Part shown: one piece after another, positions 42,198 through 60,712 of the stretch
How the letters are laid out: each line of letters starts with the position of its first letter
Position numbering within the stretch: the stretch's first letter is position 1
NCBI GenBank assembly: GCA_033442325.1
Contig: JAWQFM010000022.1
Span: forward strand, 446,025-510,024
Direction of reading: 5' to 3'
DNA: 64,000 bases
From: Salpingoeca rosetta
Taxonomy: Eukaryota > Protista > Choanoflagellata
The notes under the pieces: generated by a model
The model's database searches: none
The model's input: the letters and a program-made list of their open reading frames with translations, nothing else
Told to the model about the DNA's origin: nothing
Position numbers and translations under genes: made by a program

Positions 42198-45100
42198 TCA
42201 CAATTCATCCTCGGGAAGCACGTTGAGGTAGCCTTCTGCAATCGTGTCGGAGTCAGCAGCGTCGCTGTCACCATCATCATCATCATCGTCGCCGGGAAGG
42301 CCAGGTTGCGTGACCCACGCCAGGCTGGACCCGAAGAGGTCCTCGATTGTCTCGTACACCTCGTCATCAGGCATGCCCACCGTGGGGTCAACCGACTCTG
42401 TATCGGCGTAGAGCGGGTTCTCCAGCGCACGCGAGCTGGCGCTGTTTGCGGTGGCGCTGACACTGCTGCTCGCGTTGGTCGCTGCTTTGCGGGCGTTGCT
42501 GCTGCGTCGACCGGTTTTGGGGTCTGACCCGGCAACGACCGCGGCGTCCACGTCCGAAGCAGCGGAGAAACGGCGCGTGAACCCGGGCACAAGTGAGCCA
42601 CGATGTGACACAACAACGTCACGTGGCGGGCCAGCCCTGTTGGTGTCCGCGCTGGATGGCCGGCGGCGGCGTAGCTCCTCCAGATCATAGTGCATGCTGG
42701 GCGCAATGGAGGGCGTGCTTGGATGCCGTGAGCGGCGGCCTTTCATCATGCCCACATCCAGGCTCGTGTCACTGTTGTTGCTCGACAGGCGCGACCCGCG
42801 TCGAAAGTTGAGCAGCGAGAAGCCAGAGCTGCGCCGGCGCTTCTCTTGCTTCCCGCCCGTCTCGCTGTCGTGCGCAGGCGAAGAAGGGCGCCGTGGCGGT
42901 GCAACGGAGGACGATGATGCTCGCGATGGCCGCTCCCCGCTGTCGCGACTGGCTGGGCGGGAGGCATCGAACATGCCAGCAAAGCCTGCTGGTGTGGACA
43001 TCCCTCCCAAGCTGCTCGTGCTGGTGTGTGTGGTGCCCATGGCGTTCTTGTCCGGCATATCTTTGGTTGAAGCCACCTTCCACCCCGCTTGCTGATTGCC
43101 ATCTTCCTCCGCATCGCCGACGCTTCTCGCCCTTTTTTTCTGCTTCTTCTTCTTCTTCAGCTTCTTCGTCTTGGTGGTGTTCTTTGAAGGTGGCAAGGCG
43201 TCGAGCTGCTGCGTGTCCTGTGGTTGCTGCTGCTGGCGGTGGTTCTTCTTCGCTTGCGGTTTCTTGTGTGTTGATGCTGTTCGAGGCTTGCGTTTCCGTC
43301 TTGCCCGCCGGCGCAGCGCAGCCAGCGCAATGAGGAGAATCACGATCAGAACAGAGTTGACAAGCGACACGAGCAGCCACACGTTGGCTGTGAGGTCAGC
43401 AGCGATACCCGCGCTGGCATCGCTGTTGCCGCCACCGCCCATGCTGCTGGTGGTTGTGGTTGTGGTCGTGGTAGACGAAGAGGTTGTCGGTGGCTCGGTT
43501 GTCGTGGTCGTCGTTGTGGTTGTCGGTGGGCGCGTGGTGTATGTGTTCTGCAAAAGCGCCGTCAAGTTGCGCACGCGCAGCTGTTGCTGGCCCAGCTTGC
43601 TCTGCACCTGCTGCAGATCCAGCGTGAGGTGCTCGTTCTCCCGCACCAGGTCATCCAGTGCGAGCACGGCTTGGTCAACCTTCATCCTCAGCGATTCGCT
43701 GCGCTGCACCGTGATGGGCGGAGCAAACTCAGCAGGGTCAGCAAAAGTGACAGCTGTCTCAGCCAGCTCAGCCACCATTGCCAGTACCGCAGTTGCGTTG
43801 ATGGCTGAGCTGTTGTTCCCACTCCTGCTGTGTGGACCGTCAGCACCGGGCACCCAAACACTGCGACGCGTGCGATGGCGCCAGCCTGGTATCGAGTCAC
43901 GATCTCCCATGTCAAGTGCGCGACGCCTGCGTGCTGGCGGCGGCAGAGACGATGGCATGGCCGAAGACACCATCGTCGTTGTGGCTGTGGCTGTGGCTGT
44001 GGCTGTAGGGGTATGATGCGTGCCATTTGCAGACATGTGCGTGCCATTTGCAGGCATGTGCGTGCTGTTGCCATGTGCTGTTGTTGTCGTTGGTGTTGTT
44101 GGCGGTGGCGGCACATCCACGTGGAAGCGCGAGAGCAAGTGCAAGCACGATGGCTGCAGCGGTGCACCGGAGAAGGACGCGTCAATGAGCGTGACGTTGG
44201 CTGCACGGTCGTGAGCCAAGAGGCTGGAGCCATTGCTGACGTGCGCCAGAGTTGTGCTGTCGTCAAAGCGCTGCCACTGGTCTGGGTGCTGGAGAAAGTT
44301 TGCCACCTTTGTCACGAGCGCGTCCGTGTGCGTGTGGGCGTCGGTGGGCGCACCCGCTTCGCCACTTGCACAGTAGAGCCACGCCACCGTCTCGCATGCC
44401 CCGGCTGTGCAGGGCACGTTGGGTGTGACGGCGAGTACAAACTCTGCCCCAAACACCTGGTTTTCCAAGTATGCAAGCGAGGTCTCGAGTTGCTGGTGCT
44501 CTGCTGCGGCCCGGACCTCCTCCGTCGCCAGCGCGTGTGTCAGGTTGGCCGCCTCTGCCTCGAGTGACACGCCCAGAGCTGCGTCGCTCGCGTTCAGGTG
44601 CCGCTCCAACGCCAACACGCGCCCATGAAGGTGCGCGTCCGATGCGCTCAGGGTGCTCACACTCGCGTTCCACGCTTCCGTGAGGAGTGCATCTTGGCTG
44701 GTGAGGCTGGCCCGGGCACCGGCCAAGTGCGAAGCCAGGCTCGCTTCCGCATCCACAGCACGCGTGTGCTCTGCTGCAGCTTGACTGGACGCAACCGAGA
44801 GCTGCTGGTGCGCGCGCGTGTCCTCTGCTGTCACAGCGGCCGCCAGGCTTGACTCCGCGCTCTGCGCTGACGCGTGCTGCTGCGAACCAACCGCACTCAG
44901 CTCGCCCTCATCCGCAACTGCAGAGGACACAACTGATGACAGCTGTGATGACAGCGCTGCCGTGTCCTGCTCAGCTTGCCGCACGTGCTGGCTAATGGCG
45001 GCGCTGTGAGTCGATTCCGTCTCCACTGTGGACACATCTACTGCATGCAGGCTTTGGCTCAGCTCACTGGCCGTTGACAAGGCACGCGCACGCTCCGAAG

Positions 45101-48100
45101 AGAGCGAAGACGCGAGTCCGGCACTGGCATCCACGCCGCGGCTGTGCTCAGAGGCGATGGCAGCGTCCATCGTGTTATGGTTCTGCTGTGCCGTCGACGC
45201 TTCAGCCGAAATGTCACGCTGCAGATCCTGTGCGGTGGCGGTGCGGGCATTGCCGATGCTGCTGGTCTCTTGGCTGAGCTCACTCGTGCGCCGGGAGCGG
45301 CGGGCTGTCTCGGCAGACAACGATGATTTCACGTCTGCGCGTGCGTTGGCGCTGCGTGACTGCTCGCTGGCAATTCGCGTTTGCAGAGAAGTTTCAGCTG
45401 CCGCTGCCTGCTGCTGCTGCGTGGCCACGGACGTTGACAGCACCGTGACCTTCTCGTGTGCTCTGCTCTGCTCCTTCCTGACAAGGGACGACAGGACAGC
45501 CTCCGCCGCACGGTTTGAAGCGCCAACACCGCTCACGCGTGCCTCCAGCGACTGCTCCGACGACAAGGCTGCAAGTCTGTCCGCGGCAATGGCACGGCTG
45601 ACACTTTTCTCACGCTCAATGGCAGCAGATTCTGCAGAGGACAGGGACGTGACAAGCCCAAAGTTTGCCACGACCTTGCCTTGTTGGATGTCGGAGATGG
45701 TTTGCTGCATCTGGTGCGCCTGTGCTGCGTCCCTCTGCGCCTCTGCAGATATGGCAGAGGCCAGGCTGCCCTCCGCTGCCATGGCGGTGGCGGTGTTCTG
45801 TGACAGGTGCGACAGAAGCGACGAGGAGGTGCTGGTGACCCGCTGCTCCTGCTGTGACATGCTGGCTGCAAGGCTGGCGTGATGGGCGAGCGTGCTCGTC
45901 TCCAGTCCAGACAGGGAGGTGCTTAGGTCGCTGCGTGCGTCCGCAGCTCGTGTTGCTTCACTGGTAATCGCCTGTGACAGCCCGCTGTGCACATCGATGG
46001 CGCGGGAATGCTCAGCACCGACTGCCTGCAACAGGCTGGCTGCAGCCACCTGCTGTCTTGCTGCTTCCGTGCTGATTGTTTCCGCGAGCTCGTCCTCCTC
46101 ACGCGTTGTGTTGGAGACAAGCACCGCCTGCTTCTGGGACAGCTGGGCAATGACAGAGGCAATCGACGCATGCGCGCGGCGGCCGGTCGACACAGCAGCA
46201 CTCAGCTCACTGCCAATGCTCGCTGCAGCTTGTGCTGCACGATCTTCCTCTGAGAGCATGCTTGCAAGCAAGTTCGCGCGCGTGGCGTGTGCCCTTGCCG
46301 CTTCGCTGCTCAGCTGCACCCCAATGGCTGCTTGACTGGCGTTGGCTGCGCTTGCGTGGGAGCGAATGGCATCTGCGAGCGACGACGACGATGAACGAAG
46401 GCCTGCCTCAGCTGCCACTGCGCGTGACGTCTCCGACTGCATGGAGGCTTCCAGCACGCTGACGGCGGACGCTTCTCGTGCCGTCTCCTGCGACAGGAGC
46501 GATGCGAGGGCGGCGCGCCTCTGCGTCGCTGTTGAGGAGATTGTGTCGATAACCTGTTCCAGCGAAGCCTCACGCGACTGCGCAACAGTCACCCGGTTGC
46601 GTGCACGGCGCTGCTGCGTGCTCGCCTGCGAACTGAGTTTGGACTCTGCGTCGAGAGCCAATGAGGTCTCCACGTCCAGTTCCATCGACAGCACCAGGCG
46701 CTGCTGGCGTATGCGGTTGCTGCCCGTCTGCACGGCGGCATCGAGCGCCGATTCAGCGGCAGCTAGTTCCGCTTGTGCGTCTGTCAGCAGTGTTTCCAGC
46801 GACTGGATGACAAACAGCTCCACATCGTCGCCTTTGGGGCCCACGGGACCAACATCGCCCTGTGCTCCTTTGTTGCCGGTTTCGCCCTTGATGCCCTGTG
46901 CCCCTTGCACGCCTTGCGGCCCAGGATCGCCCACAGGACCTGGCACAGTGCAGCGTGTACGTATACGTATGTGTGTGTGTATTTGTGAGTGTGAGTGTGA
47001 GTGTGTGTGTGTGAGTGTGAGTGTTTGTGTGTGTGTGTGTGTGTGAGTGTGAGAGAGAGAGTGTGTGTGGAAAAGTGAGATGGAAGCAATTGTCCTGACC
47101 ACGATGATGAAGGTTGTTTTGGTGTGGATGCGACCATGTGTGTGTAAGTGCGATACATGTGTGGTATCTCTCATTCACGCACACACACAAACACACACAC
47201 ACGCACACATACACACACGCACACACACACACACACACACACTCTCTCTCTCTGCGCATGGTACCTCGAATTCCCTGTGGTCCTGGGTCGCCCTGTGGCC
47301 CCTGTTCGCCCTGTGGGCCTTGAGGCCCCTGCGGCCCCTGCGGCCCTTGAGGACCAGGATCGCCTGTCAAACAAGCCGCGTTGTGATCGTTGTTGTGAAT
47401 ATGGAGCCATGAAGGACAGCAGCAGTGATGGCATGTGTATCACACATACTCATGTGCAAATGAAGGAAAATGCGCGCCGATGTGTCAATCACACATACAT
47501 ACACCTGACACACACACATACATACACCTGAGACACACATATACATACACCTGACATACACACACACACACACACACAAGCACACACATACACACACCTG
47601 ACACACACACACACCTGACATACACACACCTTGTTCACCCTGCGGCCCCTGTGGTCCGGCATCGCCTTGGTCACCCTGGGCGCCCTGTGGCCCCTGTTCT
47701 CCCTGTGGCCCTTGATCCCCCTGCTCACCCTTGATCCCCTGAGGCCCCTGGGGTCCGGGTGCACCAGCGGGGCCCTGGTCACCCTGTACGCCTTGATCGC
47801 CCTTGGGGCCCTGCGGCCCTGGGTCGCCTGCAACCCCCTGTTGCCCCTGTGGTCCCTGTTCTCCCTGTGGCCCCTGCGGCCCTGGTGCGCCCACCTCCCC
47901 CTTTGCACCAGGTGCGCCTTGCTCGCCCACGTCGCCTTTGTCGCCCTGCGGTCCCGGTGCACCGTCATCGCCGTTCACTCCAGGCAGCCCTTGTGGCCCC
48001 TGTGGCCCCTGTGCACCCGCATCCCCCGTTGGGCCCTTTGCTCCTCTATTTCCTTGTGGGCCTTGAGGCGCTGTTGACATTTTTGGTTGCATCAGGGGCA

Positions 48101-49105
48101 TGGTTGAAGGGAGGCAAGGGGACAGGCAGGACATGTTGCAAGTTGTGAGGTGGTGATGGAGGTGGGGTTGTTTGTTGTCACAGCAGTGCGTGGGGCCCTT
48201 ACACGCGTGTGTGAGAGCGCACAGGTGGCAAGCATACGAACAATTGCATCCAAGCAATGAATCGAAGGCCACAAACCTGCAACGCATTGCCCGCCGTCCC
48301 AATAGTAGTTTGTCGAGCAGCCTGATAATGGAATGACAGTTGTGAATGTGTGCGTGTGCGTGTGTGTGTGCGCGTGCGTGTGTGTGTGTGTGTGTGTGTG
48401 CGTGTGCGTAAGTCCGTGTGCTTGTATTTACAGGACGAGGCAGAAAAGATAAAAAACGAAGCAGGCAAACGTGAAAATGTGCAGGCTCGTGCTGAAAGAC
48501 ATGGCGACGTGCAGACAGGCGCATGCATGTACATGTAAAATTAACGATCACTTACGGCACACGCGCCCGAATGAGTACTCGGAGTTGCCTTGGCACTCGA
48601 CGTCGCACACAAAGAACGCAAACCTGGTTGTGCGTGTGCGTTCGTGCATGCGTGTGTGCGCGTGTGCGTGCGTGTGTGTGTGTGTGTGTGAGTGTGCGTC
48701 ATGGGAGTTGACTCAAGTGTTAGTCTTGGCCGGAAGTTGGCATGCAAAGCCACAGATGAAGCAGGCATGCAAAGCCACACACAGTCACACAGAGTCACAC
48801 ACACACACACACGCACACACGCACACGCACGCACGCACGCACACACACACACACAGAGCCACACAGTCAGCCCAGATGATGGCCAGACCTGCGGTCAGTG
48901 GAGCTGCTGTCGTATGCGGAGGAGATGCCGCGAATGGCCTTGCGGATGCCGGGGTCATAGTTGAGCGTGCCTTTCAGACTATTGATGTATGACGTCCAGC
49001 TGCAAGGTATTTTGGAGAGAGGAAAGCGAATGTGAGAGGAGGCAGTGGAGTAGGGCGCAGTGAAATGCTCATGTGAAATAAGCACGTTTGATGAACAAGA
49101 ACGTG

Positions 49106-49142
<37 letters not shown>

Positions 49143-50148
49143 GTGCACAAAAGTACAAACACATACACACAAAAGTACAAACACAGAAAACATGTCCGCA
49201 CCTGCAGCTACTTTGGTACGTGATGCCAGAGTTGAGCTTTCCGCAGGAAATGGACCAGACTCGATCCTGTCAGCGACAAGTAGGAAGAATGGGAACGTGA
49301 GGGAGGCAGTGCGGGTGGTCTTGGTTGTGCAACGCATTCCTTGAGATCAGTATGTTATATGACAAGACCTTCCAGTCAAAAGGCACCTCGTTTGTGTTGC
49401 TGTGGACGCTTGCAAGTCCCGTCACAAAGGAGTCAACTGGCATAAAAGCAACGCAAGCAAGCAGAAGCAAACACATGATGAGGTTCGGTGAGGCATGATC
49501 CGGAGGACACACACGTGAGGGGGGGGGGGGAGTTGGAGAGAGGGACTGTCATGCAAATGTAGTGCAAACAAATGACGCAGCTGCGACTGTACGTGTGCAT
49601 GACTATGGCATAATAACTGAGCCACGCCCACAACATCGCACCCTTCTTCCCAGACCCACACAGAACGCCACCCCCTTTTCACACTAACCTGGGCATGTGT
49701 ATGAGAAGGCTTGCTTGTAGTTGTTGAGAGAAGCCTCTGCTGTGTGCTTGAAGGACAAGCTTGCAGCTTCGCAGTGGAAGGCCCATTGTCGGTCGTGATT
49801 ACTGTTGCTGTACACGGAGTAGACGCCTGTCAAAATGGTGTCCCCACCACACTCGAACGCCAGGTCGTTGTCAAAGTCGTTGAGATACCCCGTGAAGTCG
49901 GAGGGTTGTGCCGTTATTCGATGGATGCCGCAAGCAAGTACCAGAGCCATTAGCAGCCACACGATGCTGCGTCTGCTGCAGCATGTTCTGCAGCCTCGTG
50001 TTGTTGCTTGTAATCGTGTGTGCTGCTGATGTTGTTGTTGTTGTTGCTGTTGATGATGTGAGCGTGTTTTGTCTTCGTCCCGCACCACCGTCACCACAAC
50101 GCACGGCGCCTCTGGGTGCCGGTGCGCGTGTTTGTGTTGCACTGCCAT
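42198..50148 (-). CDS. Dermatopontin-domain / collagen / Ser-Ala coiled-coil type I membrane protein, paralogue A
   Basis: Signal-like [23 protein letters not shown] repeats [13 protein letters not shown]...HDRQWAFHC, ...[16 protein letters not shown]...DRRFAFFVC. Collagen exons 48070-47630, 47363-47265, 46939-. 804-aa Ala/Ser stalk; RRRR/RTRR; Thr run; [25 protein letters not shown]; tail NPLY. Start codon uncertain. Confidence 0.85.
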
Positions 50149-50587
50149 CACTGGCGCAACATGGGCAGAGCCGTGTACTTGAAGGAAGCAAGACCGGGCG
50201 GATGTAGGGAAGAAGGACAACGCGTGTGTGATTGTTCTGGGGCCGTGGAGTGCAGGCATCGAACCAAACACCACCACCACACACAAACCAAACACGCAAA
50301 CAAACAAACAAGAACACAGAAGACAGTCGGAGAAGAAGCGACGCGAAATGGCATGTTTGCGGAATATTCACAAATATCTTCAACCAAAAATCCGCAATTC
50401 AGGCGTTCGAGGCTGCAGCGAGTGTTTGGTGGCGAGCGAGTGTTTGAAATGGTGTGAGACGCTGCGAGCGCAGAGACAACAACCAACAGTGGTGGTGGTT
50501 GGTGGTGTTGTTGTCGATGGTGTTGGTGATGATGAAGCATAAGCCATGCCATGGCAAGAAACGAGCGAGAGGATCAATACATAAGCG

Positions 50588-51992
50588 CTACGCACTGAGG
50601 CTGCTGGTGTCATCCGTGACTTCAAGAGACAGCTTGGTGTTGCTTGGACTGGACACCTCGTCTGCATGGCCTTCGTCCTCTTGTTGCTCTGTTGATGACA
50701 ACACCAGCAGGTGAGGGAGGGGGGAGAGGAAGGGAGTACATGTACGAACCCATGCTCGCACGCAGGCACACAGATAGACAGACACACATACACACACGCA
50801 CGCACACCCGAACACACACACGAACACACATACACACGCACACACACAACACACACGCACACACACACACGCGCGCAGAGCTTGCATCGCTGTCCCTACC
50901 TGCGCCCTCGTCGCCGGCTTCTTCTGTAGTCTCTGCTGGCGTTGCCTCTGGCTCTTGTTTACCCTCCTCCTCCTCCTCCTCCTCCTCCTCCTTGTTCACT
51001 TCATCTCCTGCAGCCTGTGTATCAGCTTCCTTGCCAGCATCAGCCTCCTCCCGTGGTGTGGGCGTCTTTGCCGTGGCTTCTTCCTCCCCACCTTGCTCGC
51101 CAACTTCCCCCTCTTTGTCCTCCTTGTCCTTCTTTACCTCCTTGTCCTCCGCCTTTTCATCCTTTGCTTCCGTCTGCCCTTCCTGCTCGCCTTTGTCTGG
51201 TGTCGGTGTCACATCACCATCACGCTCGCCATGACGCTCAGCATCGCCATCTTCGTCATCGGCCACCTCTGCGTCGCCGCTTTCGCCCTGTTGTGTGTCC
51301 GGCACCTCCGGTGTGGTGGTGGTCACCGTCGACACTGCGCTGTCAGCGACTGCATCATCAGGCGAGGGCGCTTCCTCTGACTGCTGCTGCTGCTCGGCAG
51401 CACGTTCTTCTTCGTCCTTGACTGCATTGGTTTCTTCTTCTTCTCCTTGGTGTTCTGCTGCCGCCGCTGGTCCTTCGGTTGTGTCGTCACCCGTGTCTGC
51501 TGCTGTCGCTGCGTCGTCTTCTGTCGTCTGTTGCTGTTGCTGCTCCTCCTCCGCAGCCTTCACGTCTTCCTGGTCGTGGCCCTCGGGCAGAGGGCACAGC
51601 GGGCACTGTGCAAACAGGGAGACAGTGCTTGGGAACTGCTGTGTGACACTGGAGTACGTGAACACGGCCGTGGCCAACGGCAGGCCCTCGTAGGCCTTGA
51701 GCGCCTCGCGTCTGGCTGCATCGTCGGCCTCGCGCTGCTGTTGGATACGCTGCCGCTCTGCTTCGGCCTCCTGCGCCCTGCGCCTTTGCGCTTCTGCTTC
51801 CTCCGCCTGCTTCTTGGCGATGTAGCTGTTGATCTCGTCCTGCTTGGCCTGCTCCCTGTCACGCGCGTCGCATGCCTGGCGCAGCAGCGAGCTGATGTGG
51901 CGGATTGGGTCCTCGGGCTGGTACTTGGCGACGTCGGCCATGGCACGCACCAGCATGTCGCCGACCGTCTCTCGGATAAACGCGGCTTCCAT
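50588..51992 (-). CDS. Dpy-30 motif (dimerisation/docking) protein with coiled coil and long acidic tail; DYDC/radial-spoke-like
   Basis: MEAAFIRETVGDMLVRAMADVAKYQPEDPIRHISSLL matches the Dpy-30 consensus (YL..tV...L..GL..l...rP.DPi.yLa..L). E-rich C-terminus; last exon ends at 50588. Confidence 0.75.
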
Positions 51993-52333
51993 CCCTGCAG
52001 TTGCCAAATCAAATCTGGCCAAGAGGTGGGCACGAGGCAAGACAAATAGACAGCACGTGGGATGCAGCCGAGAAAGATGACGCAACGAGCAAGCATGCAT
52101 GCATGGAAACGGGCGGTGACATGAGCCAAAGTGAACAACAAAACAAGAGTATGCCAAAGCATGTATGCAAACAAAACAAACAAGAAGGGCAAACTTGCCA
52201 AGCAAGAGTCAACTCAAACAAAGCGCACTTGTTTGTCGTCAATGTCACGCACACATACACGTGCACACGAGTCGGCTGGTGTGCGGGAGACAAAACAGGG
52301 ACGAACACCACCACCACCACCACCACCACCACC

Positions 52334-52364
<31 letters not shown>

Positions 52365-52526
52365 CCAACACCAACACCAAGCGCACCTTGTTGTTGTTCC
52401 GTCTTTGAAGAAGAAGGGGAGGGCGCGTTTGGCGTTGTGAAGATGGAAAATTGAGGCAAAACGTTCGTCAATTGTCGGCTGTGCCAGCAGCCAGACGGGA
52501 GGACAAGCAAGCAAGAAGCAAGCGAG

Positions 52527-53224
52527 ATGCTGCTGGTGGGTGTGTGCTCTTGTGTGTGTGTGCGTGTGTGTATGCTTTTGTATGTGTATGCTCTTGTGTG
52601 TGTGTGTGTATGCTCTTGTGTGTGTGTGCTTGTGCGGGTGTGTGTATGAGACTCAAGTGTGCATTGTGCCTCATTACCCACTGATGATGTATGTCCTGCA
52701 CCTTGCCCTGTTTCGTCGTGCCAATTGTGCAGGCAAGACTTGTACTGGTGCTGGTCGCCAGTCACTGCTTGTGCCCTGCTGTGGCGCAACCATCGCCCCC
52801 GAGTGGCTGGACAGACTACATCAACGAATACGACGAGGAACTGGACTTTACTTGCGCTCCAGGCAACGTCCTCTCTGGTCTCCTCAGCTACCACGAGTAA
52901 GCGCAGACAGAGGAGGCGTGTGTCTGTGTCTGTGTCTGTGTTGTGTTGTGTTTGTGTTGTGTTGTGTTGTGTTATTGCTGTGGTTGATGTTACCCACTTT
53001 TTGACTGCCAAACGAACACAACACACACACATGCACACACGCACATACACACACACACACGCACCCACGCGCGCACTTTCACACCCATCCACAGCAACAA
53101 TAAAGAGGATCGGCGGTGGGCATTCACGTGCAAAGAGGCGGAGCTGTTTGAGCATTGGGAGAGCGGATGGATCAACAACTTTGACGCGCCTGCAAGCATC
53201 ACCTGCCCAAGTGCGTGCTCGCGC

Positions 53225-53256
<32 letters not shown>

Positions 53257-53838
53257 GAGCGCGCGCGCCTGTGAAATCCGCGCTGAATTGTCATGAACTT
53301 CGCCTGTCTTTGCCTGCGAATGTTTCAGCCAAACTTGTCTCTCATTGTTGCTCACTCGTTGCTTACTTCTTGTGCCACAGGCGGCTTTGCACTCACCGGC
53401 CTACGAAGCTACCACGACTCAAACAATGAGGTGAGCCTATGGAAGTCCAAGCCGTTCACCTTACACGCGTGTACCCATAGGATCCACGCACACATACACA
53501 CACAGTGCATACATATACATACAGTGTACACATACAGATGCATGCACAGACAGAGTGTGCGTACGCCTTGTTTTGCTTGCAAGCAGCCGCTCACTGTCTC
53601 ACCCTGATGCGTGTGCTTGTTTGCGCTTACAGGACCGGAGATCGCAGGCCCGTTGCCAGCGGTTCACCAGCCCGCTCGCATATGAGACATCGTGCGCGTG
53701 GACGAACTACATCAACACCTTTGATGACCCCCTCTCTTGGTCCGTTTCTTCCACCCGCGTCATTCGTGGGTTTGGCTCCTACCACAGCAACAACAAGTAT
53801 GTCACATGCGCTTGCGCTGTGTGTGTGTATGTGTGTGT

Positions 53839-53929
<91 letters not shown>

Positions 53930-54712
53930 CTGCATATTCATGTGCAAGTTTGCACCGTACCGCCTCACTCCACCCCGCCACTGCCGTCACACCACCACCC
54001 CGCCACTGCCGTCACACCACCACCCCGCCACTGCCGTCACACCACCACCCCGCCACTGCCGTCACACCACCACCCCGCCACTGCCGTCACACCACCACCC
54101 CGCCACTGCCGTCACACCACCACCCCGCCACTGCCGTCACACCACCACCCCGCCACTGCCGTCACACCACCACCCCGCCACTGCCGTCACAATGCAGCGA
54201 GGATCGACGGTTCAAATTCCTGCACTGCGGCGTTTCCTGCTTCCAACCGGCCGTGCAGTCCGATGCACAATGCGGTGAGTACCCATCCATCCCCCTCATA
54301 TCCTCTTCTTCGGCACCTTGCCATCCAAACACTCATGTTGTCGTTGTTGTTGTTGTTGTTGTTGTCGTCGTTGTTGTTGTTGTTGTCGTTGTTGTCGTTG
54401 TTATCGTGCAACACGAGTGTTTGGTGTGGTGATACGCTGACTCAAGTCCCCTCGCTGCGTGCATTGCTGCTGTGCTTTTGTGTCGCGCTCATGCCTTCTT
54501 CCCGTCTCCTGCCGTCTTGATCACTCACTGCCTGTAATCAGAATGCACCTCCGACTACTTCAAGAACCACGGAACGTGCCAGCAAAGTGAGTGAATGTGT
54601 GAGTGAGAGTGTGAGTATGTGAGGTTGGACATGTTATGTGCTTGTGTGTGATATGATAACTTGTACGTCGCACTTGTGTCACTATGCATCCTGTCACTGC
54701 GTTCCCCCCACC

Positions 54713-54790
<78 letters not shown>

Positions 54791-57700
54791 ACACACAGTT
54801 CCAATTGGTGCACCCGGTCCAAAGGGGTTCACGGGCGATACCGGCGCGAAGGGTCCACAGGGTCCACAGGGAGCACGCGGCCCGCAAGGCGCTCCAGGTA
54901 CTTGCATGCACACATGCACGCACACATGTGTTGAGCTTTTGATGTGTGTGTGTGTATTCATGTGTTTGTACGTACAAGCATGTGGAAAACCTGTACACGT
55001 GTGTTTCCAAGTGTGTTGGGGGGGGGGAATCTCGCTTGCTAGCTCGCTTGCTTGCTTGTTTGGTGTTTGGAGTCTGCCACTCCTACCTTATGCATATCCG
55101 ACATCTTTTAACATCCTTCACGCCATTGCCACAACCATCTTCCCCTGCTCCCTGCACGCGGCACGCTGTCACCGTCCAAAGGCCAGGACGGTGCTGTTGG
55201 CGCCAAAGGGATCAAGGGCGACATGGGCGCACCAGGACCAGCCGGTCCGCAGGGCGATCAAGGTGCACGCGGTGACGCGCCATGTCGCACCTGCACACTG
55301 ACTGCATGCTTTGTCTGTTTGCATTTGACAGGGAGGGCGGACGGGGTTGCAAGGTTTCTGTTGTGACATGACTATTGGTGTTCATGCACGACCTCTGCCC
55401 AACATGAGCTTGCATACATACACACTCACTCACTCACTCACTCACTCACTCACTCACTCACTCACTCACTCACTCACTCACTCACTCACTCACACAATCG
55501 TCCATGTCTGTTCACAGGTTCTCCTGGCCCCATTGGACCTCAGGGGCCTGTGGGGGTGCCTGGCCTTCAAGGCGTCAAGGGACCACAGGGGCTGCCGGGG
55601 CCACAGGGCGACCAGGGCATCAAAGGTGCGGCGCCATCGTGCTCTCGTGTGCACGTGCTCATTCTGTTTGCTTTCCGTTTTTTTTTTTCTTTGTTCATTC
55701 TGACCAAAACAGTGACGGCTACAGTGCCAGCATGTTCGTGTCCGCAGTTGCTCGATGCCTTTCCTTGCTGCACGTGGCGTTTCACCCTTTTGCATATCGC
55801 CCCTCTCCCTCTCTATTGTTCTCTTTCTTTCTCTCCCGTTCTCTTTCCCTGCTGTCTTCAAGCTCTTCACGCCCTTTGCTGCCTCTTTGCGTTGTGTGTT
55901 GTCCTTTCTCATGACCGTTTATCGTTTGACCAATTTACTCAGGTGTTCAAGGTGATCCCGGCCCACAGGGCAGCCCAGGTCCCAGTGGCATCCAGGGAGA
56001 TAAGGGTGCGTGAATGTGTATGTGCGTGCATGAGTGTGATTGTGTGTATTTGTGGGCGTGAAGATGAACATGTGCTTGTGTGCGCGTGCGTACGCAGCAG
56101 CTTCACTTTGCTCCCATATGCTGAACATCACTTCGCTGAAGCACAACCCAAGCGTCCAATCTCTTGTTCTCATCATGCCCTCTCCCCACCTTCCACTGTC
56201 CCTCTCCACCCAGGCCCTGTGGGCGATATTGGGTTGCCCGGGCCACAAGGAATTCCCGGCCCAAAAGGACCAACAGGTGAATGCTCCCGCTGAATTTGCA
56301 ACTGGATGCAAGGAACCCTTACACACACACACGCACACACACACACACGCACACACACACACACACGCACACACACACACACACGCACTCACTCACTCAC
56401 ACACACACACACACACACTCACAAACTCACTCACACACACTCACTCACTCACTCACTCACTCACGCACACATACACATACACTCACTCACACACACACAC
56501 ATACACATACACTCACTCACACACACACACATACACACACATACACATACACTCACTCACACACACACACACACACACACATACACTCACTCACACTCAC
56601 TCACACAACACGTGGCACCGCCAACGACAGGCCCTGTTGGCGTGCGTGGATTGAAAGGGCCAATGGGCGACCCTGGGCCCATTGGCGTACAAGGCGATGT
56701 TGGTGCACAAGGCCCCCAGGGAATCAAAGGGCTGCAAGGGTCACAGGGGCCACAGGGCCTAAAAGGAGCGCAGGGCCCACAAGGCGATCCCGGCCTGCAG
56801 GGTGTCCAGGGCGACAAAGGCACAACAGGTGACCAAGGTCCTGTGGGTCCAAAGGGCCCTCGTGGCGAAGATATCAACCCAGCGCTGATCCAGCACCTGC
56901 AGAGCAACATCTCAATCGAAGCGTCACAGACCAGCGACGCTGCCGAATCCTTGAATGCGGACATATCCTCGCGCATCGTCAACACGTCGCTCACCACAGA
57001 CGAGCTCATGCGCAGCGCCATCTCGCACGAGACGCAGCGCCAGGCCGCCGCCCGCTCCATGCTGAGTCTGCAGATTTCAACAGACCAGGCCGCCCTGTCC
57101 AGTGAAGTGCAGCGCGCCACGCAGGCGGAGTCCTCCCTCTCCGTGTCCGTGGCCGGGCTGAGCGGCGCCGTGGTGGGCGGTGTCTCCTCTGTATCGCAGA
57201 TGATCAGCGCAATGGACAGCGGTGCCGTCGCGCGCGAGGCGTCCCTGCACGTGCGCGCCAGCAACGAGCGCATCAGGGCAGACAGCGCGCACGCCTCGCT
57301 AGAATCGCAACTCCAACAGCAGGCCAGCGCGGTGGCGGCTGCAGACGCACGTGCGCGCAGCACAGAGGACATGCTTGCAAGCAGCCTGTCGTTGCAGGTG
57401 ACATCGAGCATCAGCGGTGAGGCCACCACTGCCCAGAACGTGTCATCCCTTGCAGCCCTGGCCCATGCCCGCCAGCTGTCACTGCAATCGGACATTTCCT
57501 CCGCTACACAGGAGGCCGGGCACCAGGAGTCATCCCTGCAGCGCCAGGCAGAGTCGCTCGTGTCCGCACTCAGCACGGAGGAGACACGGCGTGTGCAGGC
57601 CTCGTCCTCCCTGGCATCCAGCATACTCGCACGACGATCAGGTGCCATGGCGACAGAGTCATCGCTAGCAGCAGCCATCAGCGCACAGCGCACGTCCACG

Positions 57701-60700
57701 GGCACCAGCATCTCCTCCCTCACCACTGCCCTCTCCTCTGCCGCATCCCTTGGACAGCAGGCAGACGACAGCCTGGCGTCGCTGCTGTCTGCAACAGCAA
57801 ACGCCGCCGTGTCCCGGGAAACGAGTCTGCAGCACACGCTCGACAGCGCCGTGTCCCTTGCCTCGTCTGCAGAGGCGACACTTGATCGCGAGCTCAGCAT
57901 CGACGTGTCGCGTGCCGTGTCTGCAGAGGCGTCCATATCCACGGCCGTGCAGGACCGCATCTCCACTGCAAAGGCGGAAGAGGCTGCGCTCGACAGCGCG
58001 CTGCAGTCACTGCATGATGTTGTGCGCGTGTCCAACGCGAACGTCTCCCTGCAGCTGCAGGCGGCCCAGTCCCGTGCTGTGCGCGAGGAAAGTCGCCTGT
58101 CCGCTGCCGTTGTCAGCGAAGCCAATCGGGCCGAGCACGCCCGTGCGGACGTGGCATCCTCCCTCTCCAGCGAGCACGTCCGCGCGCTGTCGGCCGTATC
58201 GTCGCTCAACGCTGCCGGGCATGACGCAATGACCTCTGCGCAGTCATCTGAAGCGCACGTGAGCAGTGCCATCACAGCAGAGGCCGGCCGGGCGCAATCG
58301 CGAGAGGAAATCGTGAGCGCAGCCATCAGCGCGCACACTGTCTCCCGCCTCTCTGCACAGGGCGTGCTGTCATCGTCCATTACCGCTGCTAGCAGCGCGG
58401 CAAGGGTAAATGCTTCGCAGTTGCGCGCAAACGTTGCAGCGCTCTCCTCCACACTGCACCAGCAGCACAGCCAGCTTGAGACCTCGTTTGCGATCGTTGC
58501 CTCTGACACGTCAACCGCCCTCAGCAGCCTGGAGGTGTTTCGCACTGCAGTCGACACCAGCGCGGTGTCCAGGGCGACGAGCATTGCTGCCGACATCTCA
58601 GCAGAGCAGAGCAGGTCGTCAGCGCAGCACGCGTCGCTCAACTCGCAGCTGTTAACAGCCATCGCTCGGGCAGACAGTGCGCAGGCAGCGTTGAGGGTCG
58701 AGGAGCAGGGTGCGGCTTCCAGTGCCAGCACCGCCGCTTCGTCGCTGGCGGTGGCAGCAGAGCAGGAGCGGGCGCGCGCGGTAAACCGGACACTGGAGCT
58801 GAACAGCCAAGTGTTGCAGGAGCAGAGCCGCGTGCAAGTTGCGCATGCGAGTGTTGCTGTCTCGCTGGCGCAGGTGTCATCGGAAGCAAGCGCGCTCGCC
58901 GCCACGCACGGCAACTTTGTGTCCTCTGAACAGAGCAGAGGCGCCGACACCCGCGCGTCCATCGCCACAGCGCTGTCTCGCGACACACAAACGCTACACG
59001 CCGTGGACGCGTCGCTGGAGACATTCATCTCGGACGCGTCGCAGCAGCTCATCACAGCGGATCAGCAGCTGTCCACTGAGCTCTCCGGTGTGCAGCAGAC
59101 GCGGTTGGCGGCCGACGCTGCGCTGCGTGAGCACCTAACGTTCACGCACAGCACGCTGTCGACCATGGTGGCGGTTGAAGCGGACAAGGCGGTTTCGCGG
59201 GAGCAGCGGGTGCTGGGGCGTCACGCCGCTGTCGCACAGGAGCTCAAGACAACGACGGTGAAGGCAATCATCGCCAACGATGTTGCCTGCACGCTCGAGA
59301 CGTGCAATTCACAGAAGATTGTCATGTGTCCCAGCGCGGCCCACCCAAACGCTGGTGCAACGACAGGCCTGGTGCAGGATCTGCTACTGGCGTTTCAGGC
59401 CAACCCGGAACGCTGGGTGCTCGACACATCGCGACAGCCAAAGCCGTCCACAATCGGCTTACAGGACCTTCGCATTCCGCGCGCATACATTCGCACGTCG
59501 CGGCAGGATGACGCATGCCTGGAGTTTGACGTGGATGTGGGCAGCGAGGCGGCGTACACGGCCGACTACACCGCGCCGGCACAGCAGCAGCAGCAGCAGC
59601 AAAGACGGCGGCGGAGGCGGAGTGTTGGAGATGTGCGGGCGCCTGGCACTGACAGCACTGGTGGTGCTGATGGCGCTGGTGGTGCTGATGGCGCTTCATC
59701 TAGTGGCATGGAATACAAGAACTCGAACCACCAGCAACAGTTGCGGGACCAACTATCACAGCAGGAGCAGCAACAGTCTGTCGCGCGTTCGCGCCGGGTT
59801 GCCTTTGTGTCTGACGATGACTTGGCAGAGTGGACGCGCCAGCTCATGATCACGGCTGGTGCGTCGCCCACTGTCGATGCCACTGGCAGGAAGTTGGTTG
59901 TTTTTGTACCTGCAGCCGTGGACGACGCCTTGCAACAGGGCGGAACCAGCAACGGCGACGATGATGTGCTTTCCGTGTCTGCACAACTGAGTTCGCTTGA
60001 CAAGCAGGTGGCTGCGGTGCGTCAGCACACGCACACGCTGCTTGCGGACACCATGCGCGCAATGGCCGACTTCAACACGACGTGGCAGGCGCTGCGTGAA
60101 GCGGAGGCCACGATTGAGTCGCGGCTCACCACCACAGCCACCACGACCACGACCACGACAACGACCACCACAACCGCAACCACGACGACGACAACAACAA
60201 CGACAACAACGAGCAGTGCACCGGACAGAGCGGGCGCGAGCACGTCCGTATTTGGCTCTGCGCCGCCGCTGCTGGTTTATGTTGCGATTGGCAATGCTGG
60301 CGCCATCATCATCGCCGTCATCGTCCTGATTGTTGTGCGGCGGCGGTACGCCAGCCAGCCCAAGGTGCACGTGGCCAAGAAGCGCCAACCCCCCAACAAG
60401 CACTTGTCCACCTCGTCCCTTCCTGCAACAGCAACAACATCCCCGTGGCGCCATTCGTTTGTTGGTGCCGGCGCTGGCGTCCGCAATTCCTTCAGCGGGG
60501 ACATGCCTGCTCTCCGCCGCCACTCCTCCTCGTCCACGACCATCATCGACGAGATGTTGGGGGCGCGCACGGTGACGAACCCGCTGTTCCACACGGCGAT
60601 TGAGGAAGCAGACGAGGCGGAGGGTGCGAGTCAGTACTACCAGCAGGTGGAGCCTGTGAAGGAAGATACAGACTCCGACGTGTTTGATCTCGACGCCATC

Positions 60701-60712
60701 GCCGGAGAGTGA
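52527..60712 (+). CDS. Dermatopontin-domain / collagen / Ser-Ala coiled-coil type I membrane protein, paralogue B
   Basis: MLL|[18 protein letters not shown] signal. DERM repeats [16 protein letters not shown]...[16 protein letters not shown]...[18 protein letters not shown]...[10 protein letters not shown]. Collagen exons 54799-54897, 55182-55262, 55518-55625, 55943-56005, 56214-56276, 56631-. 805-aa stalk; RRRRRR/RSRR; Thr run; [25 protein letters not shown]; tail NPLF. Confidence 0.87.
53971..54190. repeat. 25-bp minisatellite (CACCCCGCCACTGCCGTCACACCAC) x ~8.8, intronic
   Basis: Perfect tandem copies ending 7 nt before the exon start (AATGCAG acceptor). Confidence 0.95.

Follow-up and report, generated by a model that had tools for sequence, protein, structure and literature searches.

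Length-matched collagen and coiled-coil rods in three neighbouring paralogues of Salpingoeca rosetta, and the case for their pairing in a mixed trimeric fibre

Two head-to-head genes of the choanoflagellate Salpingoeca rosetta encode collagen helices followed by coiled-coil stalks of nearly equal length, which raises the question of what holds both rods to one length. The genes lie in a window of 64,000 nucleotides (nt) (assembly GCA_033442325.1, contig JAWQFM010000022.1, here C22:446025-510024), where the two large open frames are found at 42198-47174 on the minus strand (gene A) and at 56306-60712 on the plus strand (gene B). A first-pass annotation had counted 72 Gly-X-Y triplets in A and 72-73 in B, had measured stalks of 804 and 805 amino acids (aa), and had proposed selection on length or register, as expected if the chains co-assemble or act as a ruler. 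The window and, for genome scans, 55.4 Mb in 68 contigs were analysed here. With a third paralogue, C, on the same contig, the analysis led us to consider it probable, although by no means certain, that B pairs with A and/or C in one mixed trimeric fibre.

A six-frame scan located the Gly-X-Y runs exactly where the first-pass annotation had put them. The count of 72 triplets in each gene was borne out, as 48 + 11 + 13 in gene A using predicted junctions and as 10 + 9 + 12 + 7 + 7 + 27 in gene B using junctions seen in RNA. Both stalk lengths, 804 aa in A and 805 aa in B, were reproduced by translation, each stalk ending at the first Cys of a C-x4-C-x7-C knot that directly follows it. Paralogue C was found at C22:532623-540770, 23 kb beyond the window. 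Besides a dermatopontin domain and an EGF-like motif it has a collagen of 49 + 11 + 13 = 73 triplets and a stalk that extends over 806 aa to the first Cys. Between the last Cys ahead of the collagen and the first Cys behind the stalk, the rod came to 1025 aa in A, 1026 aa in B and 1027 aa in C. In all three, 221 aa separate the last Cys of the EGF-like motif from the collagen end (with a predicted junction in A), the extra triplet of C taking the place of three linker residues. The flanking segments vary up to 4.5-fold among the three genes: from the first Cys to the transmembrane (TM) segment there are 343, 327 and 427 aa in A, B and C, and the cytoplasmic tails have 371, 124 and 566 aa, respectively. 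Since the third paralogue repeats the lengths of the first two, with 73 triplets and 806 aa, the match of the rods exceeds chance and is real and maintained.

Equal lengths could in principle arise by coincidence or as an artefact of the gene models, since the splice sites of A and C are predicted and donors had to be chosen in B. The RNA basis for gene B (52000-57900) consisted of a 4,444-nt spliced contig (X4), the contigs of a second study (X5) and raw reads (X21, X22). It revealed the collagen junctions 54897>55182, 55262>55518, 55625>55943, 56005>56214 and 56276>56631, together with further junctions upstream of the collagen. The donor after 55262, on which the count of 72 in the first-pass annotation was based, could be seen in both contig sets (X4, X5), raw reads being without coverage of that junction, while the alternative donor after 55271 was not observed. 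The spliced frame encodes 1,717 aa, in which a signal peptide and a dermatopontin domain are followed by an EGF-like Cys motif, 72 triplets without interruption and the stalk, and the last collagen piece (56631-56872) forms the start of the last exon. For gene A, the last in-frame GGT of each run was taken as the donor, as predicted from the splice consensus, and the resulting model gains support from paralogue C, whose exon layout is identical. All collagen introns are in phase 1, each splitting a Gly codon (G/GT...AG/GN, with slashes at the splice sites). The model of A used here is the one that maximises the charge complementarity with B described below; alternative models lower the fit from 19 to 7-12 pairs. 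With the junctions of B seen in RNA, a third gene giving matching lengths and the loss of fit under other models of A, an artefact or coincidence appears very improbable.

Analysis of the stalks revealed autocorrelation peaks at 18, 36 and 54 residues and the consensus E-x-S-R-A-x-S-A-E-A-S-L-S-S-A-L-S-A, with hydrophobic or small residues at positions 5, 8/9, 12 and 16, in a 7+11 pattern at 3.6 residues per turn. Repeats within one stalk are only ~19% identical. The identity between the stalks of A, B and C in register was 18-21%, not above that in registers shifted by whole repeats. Pairwise alignment for indels, a check proposed with the first-pass annotation, was run with BLASTP. The gapped A-B alignment (26% identity, 18% gaps) suggested compensating 72-aa indels; this was rejected, as the best local matches lay on many diagonals congruent modulo 18. 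Such matches reflect the repeat consensus and not position, and the BLASTP gaps are therefore uninformative.

Evidence for collinearity came instead from phase shifts, which were decoded by a cyclic 18-state hidden Markov model (HMM). Shifts of +7 could be observed after residues 80, 145 and 225 of the stalk of A, after residues 72, 150 and 222 in B, and after residues 69, 148 and 214 in C; the pattern then continues unbroken for 579 aa in A, 583 aa in B and about 580 aa in C. With three extra-heptad shifts at matching positions, the stalks prove collinear although their residue identity equals the repeat background. Furthermore, the volumes of core residues correlate between the chains in the unshifted register only (r = 0.33, 0.26 and 0.22; 0 of 30 repeat shifts reach these values), a correlation driven mainly by the last five repeats. 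Judged by these sequence measures, the three stalks are collinear at both ends, with an equal number of repeats between. A manual count of the co-occurrence of ExxR motifs between chains over the stalk repeat rows, made without statistics, gave no clear pattern.

Matched rods might also be explained by a frozen ancestral architecture in which total length is not under selection, the repeats being too diverged for unequal crossing-over and short indels being purged as breaks of phase or frame. The low identity among the repeats of a stalk and the phase strictly held over ~580 aa fit this explanation, as does the DNA comparison. A and C share one 1.18-kb block with 87% DNA identity (window 48038-46858 on the minus strand against C22:534198-535267), which comprises the collagen exons and their introns only, the heads and stalks being without DNA similarity; beyond this block nothing in A, B or C could be aligned as DNA, and there was no DNA similarity between or within the stalks. 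However, the gain or loss of a triplet in a homotrimeric collagen is structurally neutral and mutationally easy, and gene A carries five GPQ triplets in a row. The collagen intron positions are wholly different between A/C (48, 11, 13-type layout) and B (10, 9, 12, 7, 7, 27), and the in-register identity of non-Gly collagen residues is 0.25, the same as in shifted registers, so that the duplication separating A/C from B must be old. The 72/72 triplets have thus been retained across lineages old enough for entirely different introns. A frozen architecture would also leave the register-specific charge complementarity of the helices unexplained, and we consider it improbable.

The collagen helices of A, B and C are uninterrupted and GPQ-rich, with net charges of -15 in A, -17 in C and +1 in B. 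The helices were aligned from the stalk junction, and Lys/Arg at Y(n) facing Asp/Glu at X(n+1) was scored as a charge pair. Yaa(n)-Xaa(n+1) on the adjacent strand is a published axial pair for heterotrimer design (PMC12533406; bioRxiv 10.1101/2024.05.21.595195). From A to B, 8 of the 10 basic residues had an acidic partner (hypergeometric p 4.7e-6), and from B to A 11 of 16 (p 8e-4); the corresponding counts were 12/16 from B to C and 7/9 from C to B. Within a single kind of chain, 6/10 pairs were found for A (p 0.05) and 6/9 for C, and 2/16 for B, which was not significant. The charge cross-correlation showed one sharp peak, at n+1 only. When the order of the triplets in B was shuffled, 6.9 +/- 2.0 pairs were obtained compared to the 19 observed, and none of 200,000 shuffles reached 19. 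Only 3 basic positions are common to A and B (2.2 expected); as the Lys positions are not conserved between them, the charge fit is not plain homology. B also holds seven pairs of its own at n+2, taken as the trailing-to-leading contact and used in the register sums. The summed pairs were 26 for BAB/BCB, 25 for ABC, 24 for ABA, 17 for AAA, 15 for CCC and 11 for BBB.

This register-specific fit is explained most economically by assembly of B together with A and/or C into a single triple helix. Selection on register, within the proposal of the first-pass annotation, is supported at the sequence level by the equal rod of C, by the matching shifts in the coiled coil and by charge complementarity in the exact register only. 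Between co-assembly and a ruler, the two readings offered by the first-pass annotation, the charge fit speaks specifically for co-assembly, with which a ruler function would be compatible as well.

A ruler without co-assembly would require that A, B and C form separate homotrimers, each holding its dermatopontin head at the same distance (~180 nm) from the membrane. Three equal rods beside very different heads, juxtamembrane parts and tails could be expected from such an arrangement, and the self-pairs of A and C suffice for a homotrimer. A relative on another contig, D, has a much longer, homogenised stalk, indicating that length in the family can change when unconstrained. The arrangement does not explain, however, why 8 of the 13 acidic X residues of B follow lysines of A and only 2 follow lysines of B itself, or why 9 of the 16 basic Y residues of B have an acidic partner in A only and none in B only. 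In addition, a B homotrimer would satisfy only 11 of the 48 possible axial pairs. Separate homotrimers are accordingly an unlikely explanation of the match, whereas a ruler function and co-assembly may both hold.

In the preferred explanation, the mixed trimer, A, B and C would supply the chains of a single kind of trimeric fibre, anchored in the membrane with type-I topology. Read from its outer end inwards, each chain would consist of a dermatopontin head, an EGF-like Cys motif, a collagen of 72 triplets, a coiled coil of ~805 aa, the C-x4-C-x7-C knot, a mucin-like spacer, the TM segment and the tail. The coiled coil would be three-stranded with its 18-residue period and, standing C-terminal to the collagen, would nucleate and align the triple helix. 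The chains would assemble parallel and in register; Lys/Arg(Y,n)-Asp/Glu(X,n+1) contacts from one chain to a different one would stabilise the collagen, with both Cys motifs as end clamps. An indel in a single chain would put the charge pairs and both Cys motifs out of register and would thus not be tolerated; parallel in-register assembly together with the pairing of B with A and/or C would in this way account for the length-matched rods. From the observed lengths, collinearity and charge complementarity we infer a trimeric state and physical co-assembly, with A.B.C, A/C.B2 or A2B as the candidate stoichiometries. The rod would be ~180 nm long, as computed with the standard per-residue rises of 0.286 nm and 0.15 nm.

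Several points weigh against the mixed trimer. The case for co-assembly is statistical throughout and drawn from sequence, and the exon junctions of A and C are predicted, not seen in RNA. A (6/10) and C (6/9) are fairly self-complementary, so that homotrimers of these chains are also possible. The n+2 contact rule is our own geometric derivation from the one-residue stagger, not taken from a paper. Around position 413 the stalk of C contains one residue more than those of A and B, the central 26 repeats lend weak support to collinearity (the A-B signal being weak), and the in-register charge complementarity between the stalks is suggestive only (best z = -2.8 among many offsets). A multimer prediction was run on the junction segments of A+B+C and gave a median score of 0.34 compared to 0.06 for the best control, with a pLDDT (predicted local distance difference test) of at least 61 for the partners and 25% or more of the contacts agreeing between runs. 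Of the 78 solved complexes used for calibration, 51 reached the mark, as did 2 of 108 mismatched pairs. Passes at up to 0.60 are rated weak; such scores occurred in only 5 of the 78 solved complexes and in each of the 4 mismatches that passed. The prediction thus lends weak support to an A+B+C assembly and does not separate mixed from pure trimers.

A stronger form of the mixed-trimer explanation can be put forward tentatively, at somewhat less than an even chance: the three genes may encode a pre-metazoan obligate heterotrimeric membrane collagen, built by the joint steps of reciprocal pair loss, a lock on length and conversion between A and C. A homotrimer gene would have been duplicated, and the partners of the ancestral Lys-Gly-Asp/Glu pairs would have been lost reciprocally, Lys in A/C and the acid in B, so that B would fold only with A or C. 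The collagen of 72 triplets and the 805-aa coiled coil of the three genes would then have been locked to one length. The 1.18-kb block shared by A and C is probably a local gene-conversion tract, by its sequence; with this collagen block kept alike, both genes stay complementary to B, and local conversion would keep A and C interchangeable partners. From one cluster of three genes the cell could in this way make fibres of ~180 nm that carry dermatopontin at the tip and differ in their cytoplasmic tails.

Chain selection and heterotrimeric collagens are taken as distinguishing marks of the extracellular matrix in animals. If the mixed-trimer explanation is true, the trio would be a clear case of a heterotrimeric collagen in the closest unicellular relatives of animals, with mixed chains as in animal collagens but with a membrane anchor and another trimerising module, a coiled coil of 18-residue period such as is otherwise found in phage fibres. 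Register-specific mixed assembly of collagen would then have arisen, or arisen again, outside Metazoa, and the genes would offer a natural example of chain specificity by axial charge pairs. On this explanation, B alone should not fold, and B plus A or C should; the organism can be grown and edited, which makes the system tractable.

The three-stranded state proposed for the stalk may find support, through an indirect sequence relation, in its likeness to fibre proteins. The best library matches to the stalk of B were fibre proteins of phages and bacteria that share the 18-residue motif (P0001 at E 9e-33), some of which end in a Peptidase_S74 chaperone domain. The repeat region of the top match, P0001, in turn matches the trimeric P22-type tail needle gp26 (4lin) at E 1.7e-4; the stalk of B searched directly against the PDB gave no significant match. 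The shared repeat motif, ETxRAxxAExxLxxxI over 18 residues, is that of Peptidase_S74-capped tail fibres and P22-type gp26. Those proteins, in contrast, lack collagen, DERM and TM parts and are soluble fibres of virions or of bacterial surfaces. The motif E-x-x-R-A-x-x-A-E-x-x-L-x-x-x-I of the stalk of B could be seen in P0001-P0006, which carry Peptidase_S74 or YadA_stalk domains.

Among animal systems, C1q A/B/C and collagen IV alpha1/alpha2 are similar in plan, with paralogous neighbouring genes (head-to-head as in A/B), equal helices, a C-terminal non-collagenous trimerising part and an apparent in-register fit of different chains. Unlike them, the chains described here have an uninterrupted helix, an 805-aa coiled coil as the trimerising part, a type-I membrane topology and a dermatopontin head. 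The comparison with COL4A1/COL4A2 made in the first-pass annotation is an analogy in gene layout alone: in the last exons of A and B, Pfam gave Collagen only and none of the NC1, C1q, SRCR or lectin domains. The Collagen match (PF01391) had an E value of 5e-13 in gene B, and the 13-triplet piece of gene A fell under the cut-off.

Collagen adjoining an alpha-helical coiled coil, in a protein that crosses the membrane once, is likewise found in membrane collagens, class A scavenger receptors and the collectin CL-P1; as a further likeness, basic, furin-type sites point to possible shedding. Members of these families have type-II topology, with the N-terminus on the inner side, and mostly form homotrimers, their heads being of the SRCR or lectin kind, whereas the topology here is type-I and the stalk far longer. 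A type-II topology does not fit B, which starts with a signal-peptide-like segment; from the TM segment to the C-terminus there are another 124 aa in B and 371 aa in A. Laminin and fibrinogen, by an analogy drawn from general knowledge, resemble the proposed fibre in their long three-chain rods, matched paralogous chains and short Cys motifs at the ends; they differ in having no known sequence relation to it, a heptad in place of the 18-residue period, and no attached collagen helix. The trio itself falls outside all of these animal families.

Features of genes A and B in the window (positions in the window; strand; basis of the assignment)
Feature	Position	Strand	Basis
Gene A last exon: last 13 triplets, stalk, Cys knot, basic (furin-type) sites, juxtamembrane coiled coil, Thr-rich spacer, TM, 371-aa tail with NPLY	42198-46940	-	open frame, translation
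Gene A C-x4-C-x7-C knot closing the stalk	44370-44411	-	translation
Gene A stalk, 804 aa, Ala/Ser-rich coiled coil, 18-residue period	44412-46823	-	translation, autocorrelation
Gene A collagen exon 2: 11 triplets	47265-47363	-	predicted boundaries
Gene A collagen exon 1: 48 triplets, 8-nt leader, split Gly at donor	47630-48070	-	predicted boundaries; layout as in paralogue C
Gene A dermatopontin (DERM) head exons	48888-49881; HMM matches 49687-49881, 48888-49010	-	PF14704 genome search, translation
Head-to-head intergenic region A/B	50149-52690	.	gene A candidate ATGs 49950 or 50148; gene B ATG 52691
Gene B 5' exons (signal peptide, DERM, EGF-like Cys motif)	52691-52896, 53095-53210, 53381-53430, 53633-53796, 54198-54274, 54542-54586	+	RNA junctions, spliced translation, DERM matches
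Gene B collagen, 72 triplets	54799-54897, 55182-55262, 55518-55625, 55943-56005, 56214-56276, 56631-56872	+	RNA junctions, splice contexts, translation
Gene B stalk, 805 aa, 18-residue-periodic coiled coil	56873-59287	+	translation
Gene B C-x4-C-x7-C knot	59288-59329	+	translation
Gene B post-stalk domain, basic sites, juxtamembrane coiled coil, Thr-rich spacer, TM segment, 124-aa tail with NPLF	59330-60712	+	

The distribution of the family was assessed by whole-genome scans, in which dermatopontin and collagen matches co-occurred at A, B and C only. Matches to PF14704 (DERM) above the cut-off were obtained in the window at 49687-49881 (-), 53042-53212 (+) and 53630-53797 (+); the further match in gene A (27.4 bits) was just below the cut-off, and a full match was found in paralogue C at C22:533643-534086. 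Dermatopontin-domain genes of Salpingoeca rosetta have been discussed earlier (PMC7971027), and our literature search found no description of this collagen/coiled-coil trio. Searches of protein collections for homologues of the stalk of A, the Cys domain of B and the tail of B gave no matches, the genes themselves being absent from the collections. A search of representative proteins with the stalk of B gave only phage and bacterial fibre proteins and no eukaryotic relatives.

When the stalk of A was used as a single protein in the genome search, only A itself was recovered, and a profile of the repeat was required to reach B, C and D. The relative D was located by this profile at C2:~2490819-2496000 on the minus strand, and has a C-x4-C-x7-C knot, an RRRR basic site, a TM segment and an acidic tail as in the trio. 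Its stalk exceeds 1,300 aa of near-identical repeats and runs into a stretch of N, which indicates that stalk length is not fixed in the wider family. The frame of D breaks near 2494372-2494400, with ~11 kb of N upstream.

Just upstream of the ATG of gene B, at 52000-52590, the stranded reads of X21/X22 were oriented as minus-strand RNA and may represent a 5' exon of gene A transcribed from a shared bidirectional promoter. Low-complexity spots at 52594-52612, 53485-53504 and 55042-55062 drew many reads whose remainder lies elsewhere, with loose ends on both sides and an odd joint, 55062>52594; these look like cross-mapping from other loci and not a part of gene B. An Rfam scan of 46000-57000 gave only microsatellite-type matches below threshold.

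Minor features could also be observed beyond the stalks. Basic runs occur in the stretch that links the Cys domain to the juxtamembrane coiled coil, RRRRRRS in B (59600-59760, +) and RRRRAL and RHRTRRS in A (43700-43990, -), and by their sequence they are possible furin-type shedding sites. In C, the first Cys of the knot is followed by a Ser/Thr-rich insert and then by the other two knot Cys, the TM segment and a Tyr-rich repetitive tail. The tails of the three chains end in an NPxY-like motif followed by an acidic stretch, the motif being NPLY in A (42198-42400, -), NPLF in B (60600-60712, +) and DPVY in C. The tail of C also contains a tandem array of YAKPKDPKYDKA-type repeats.

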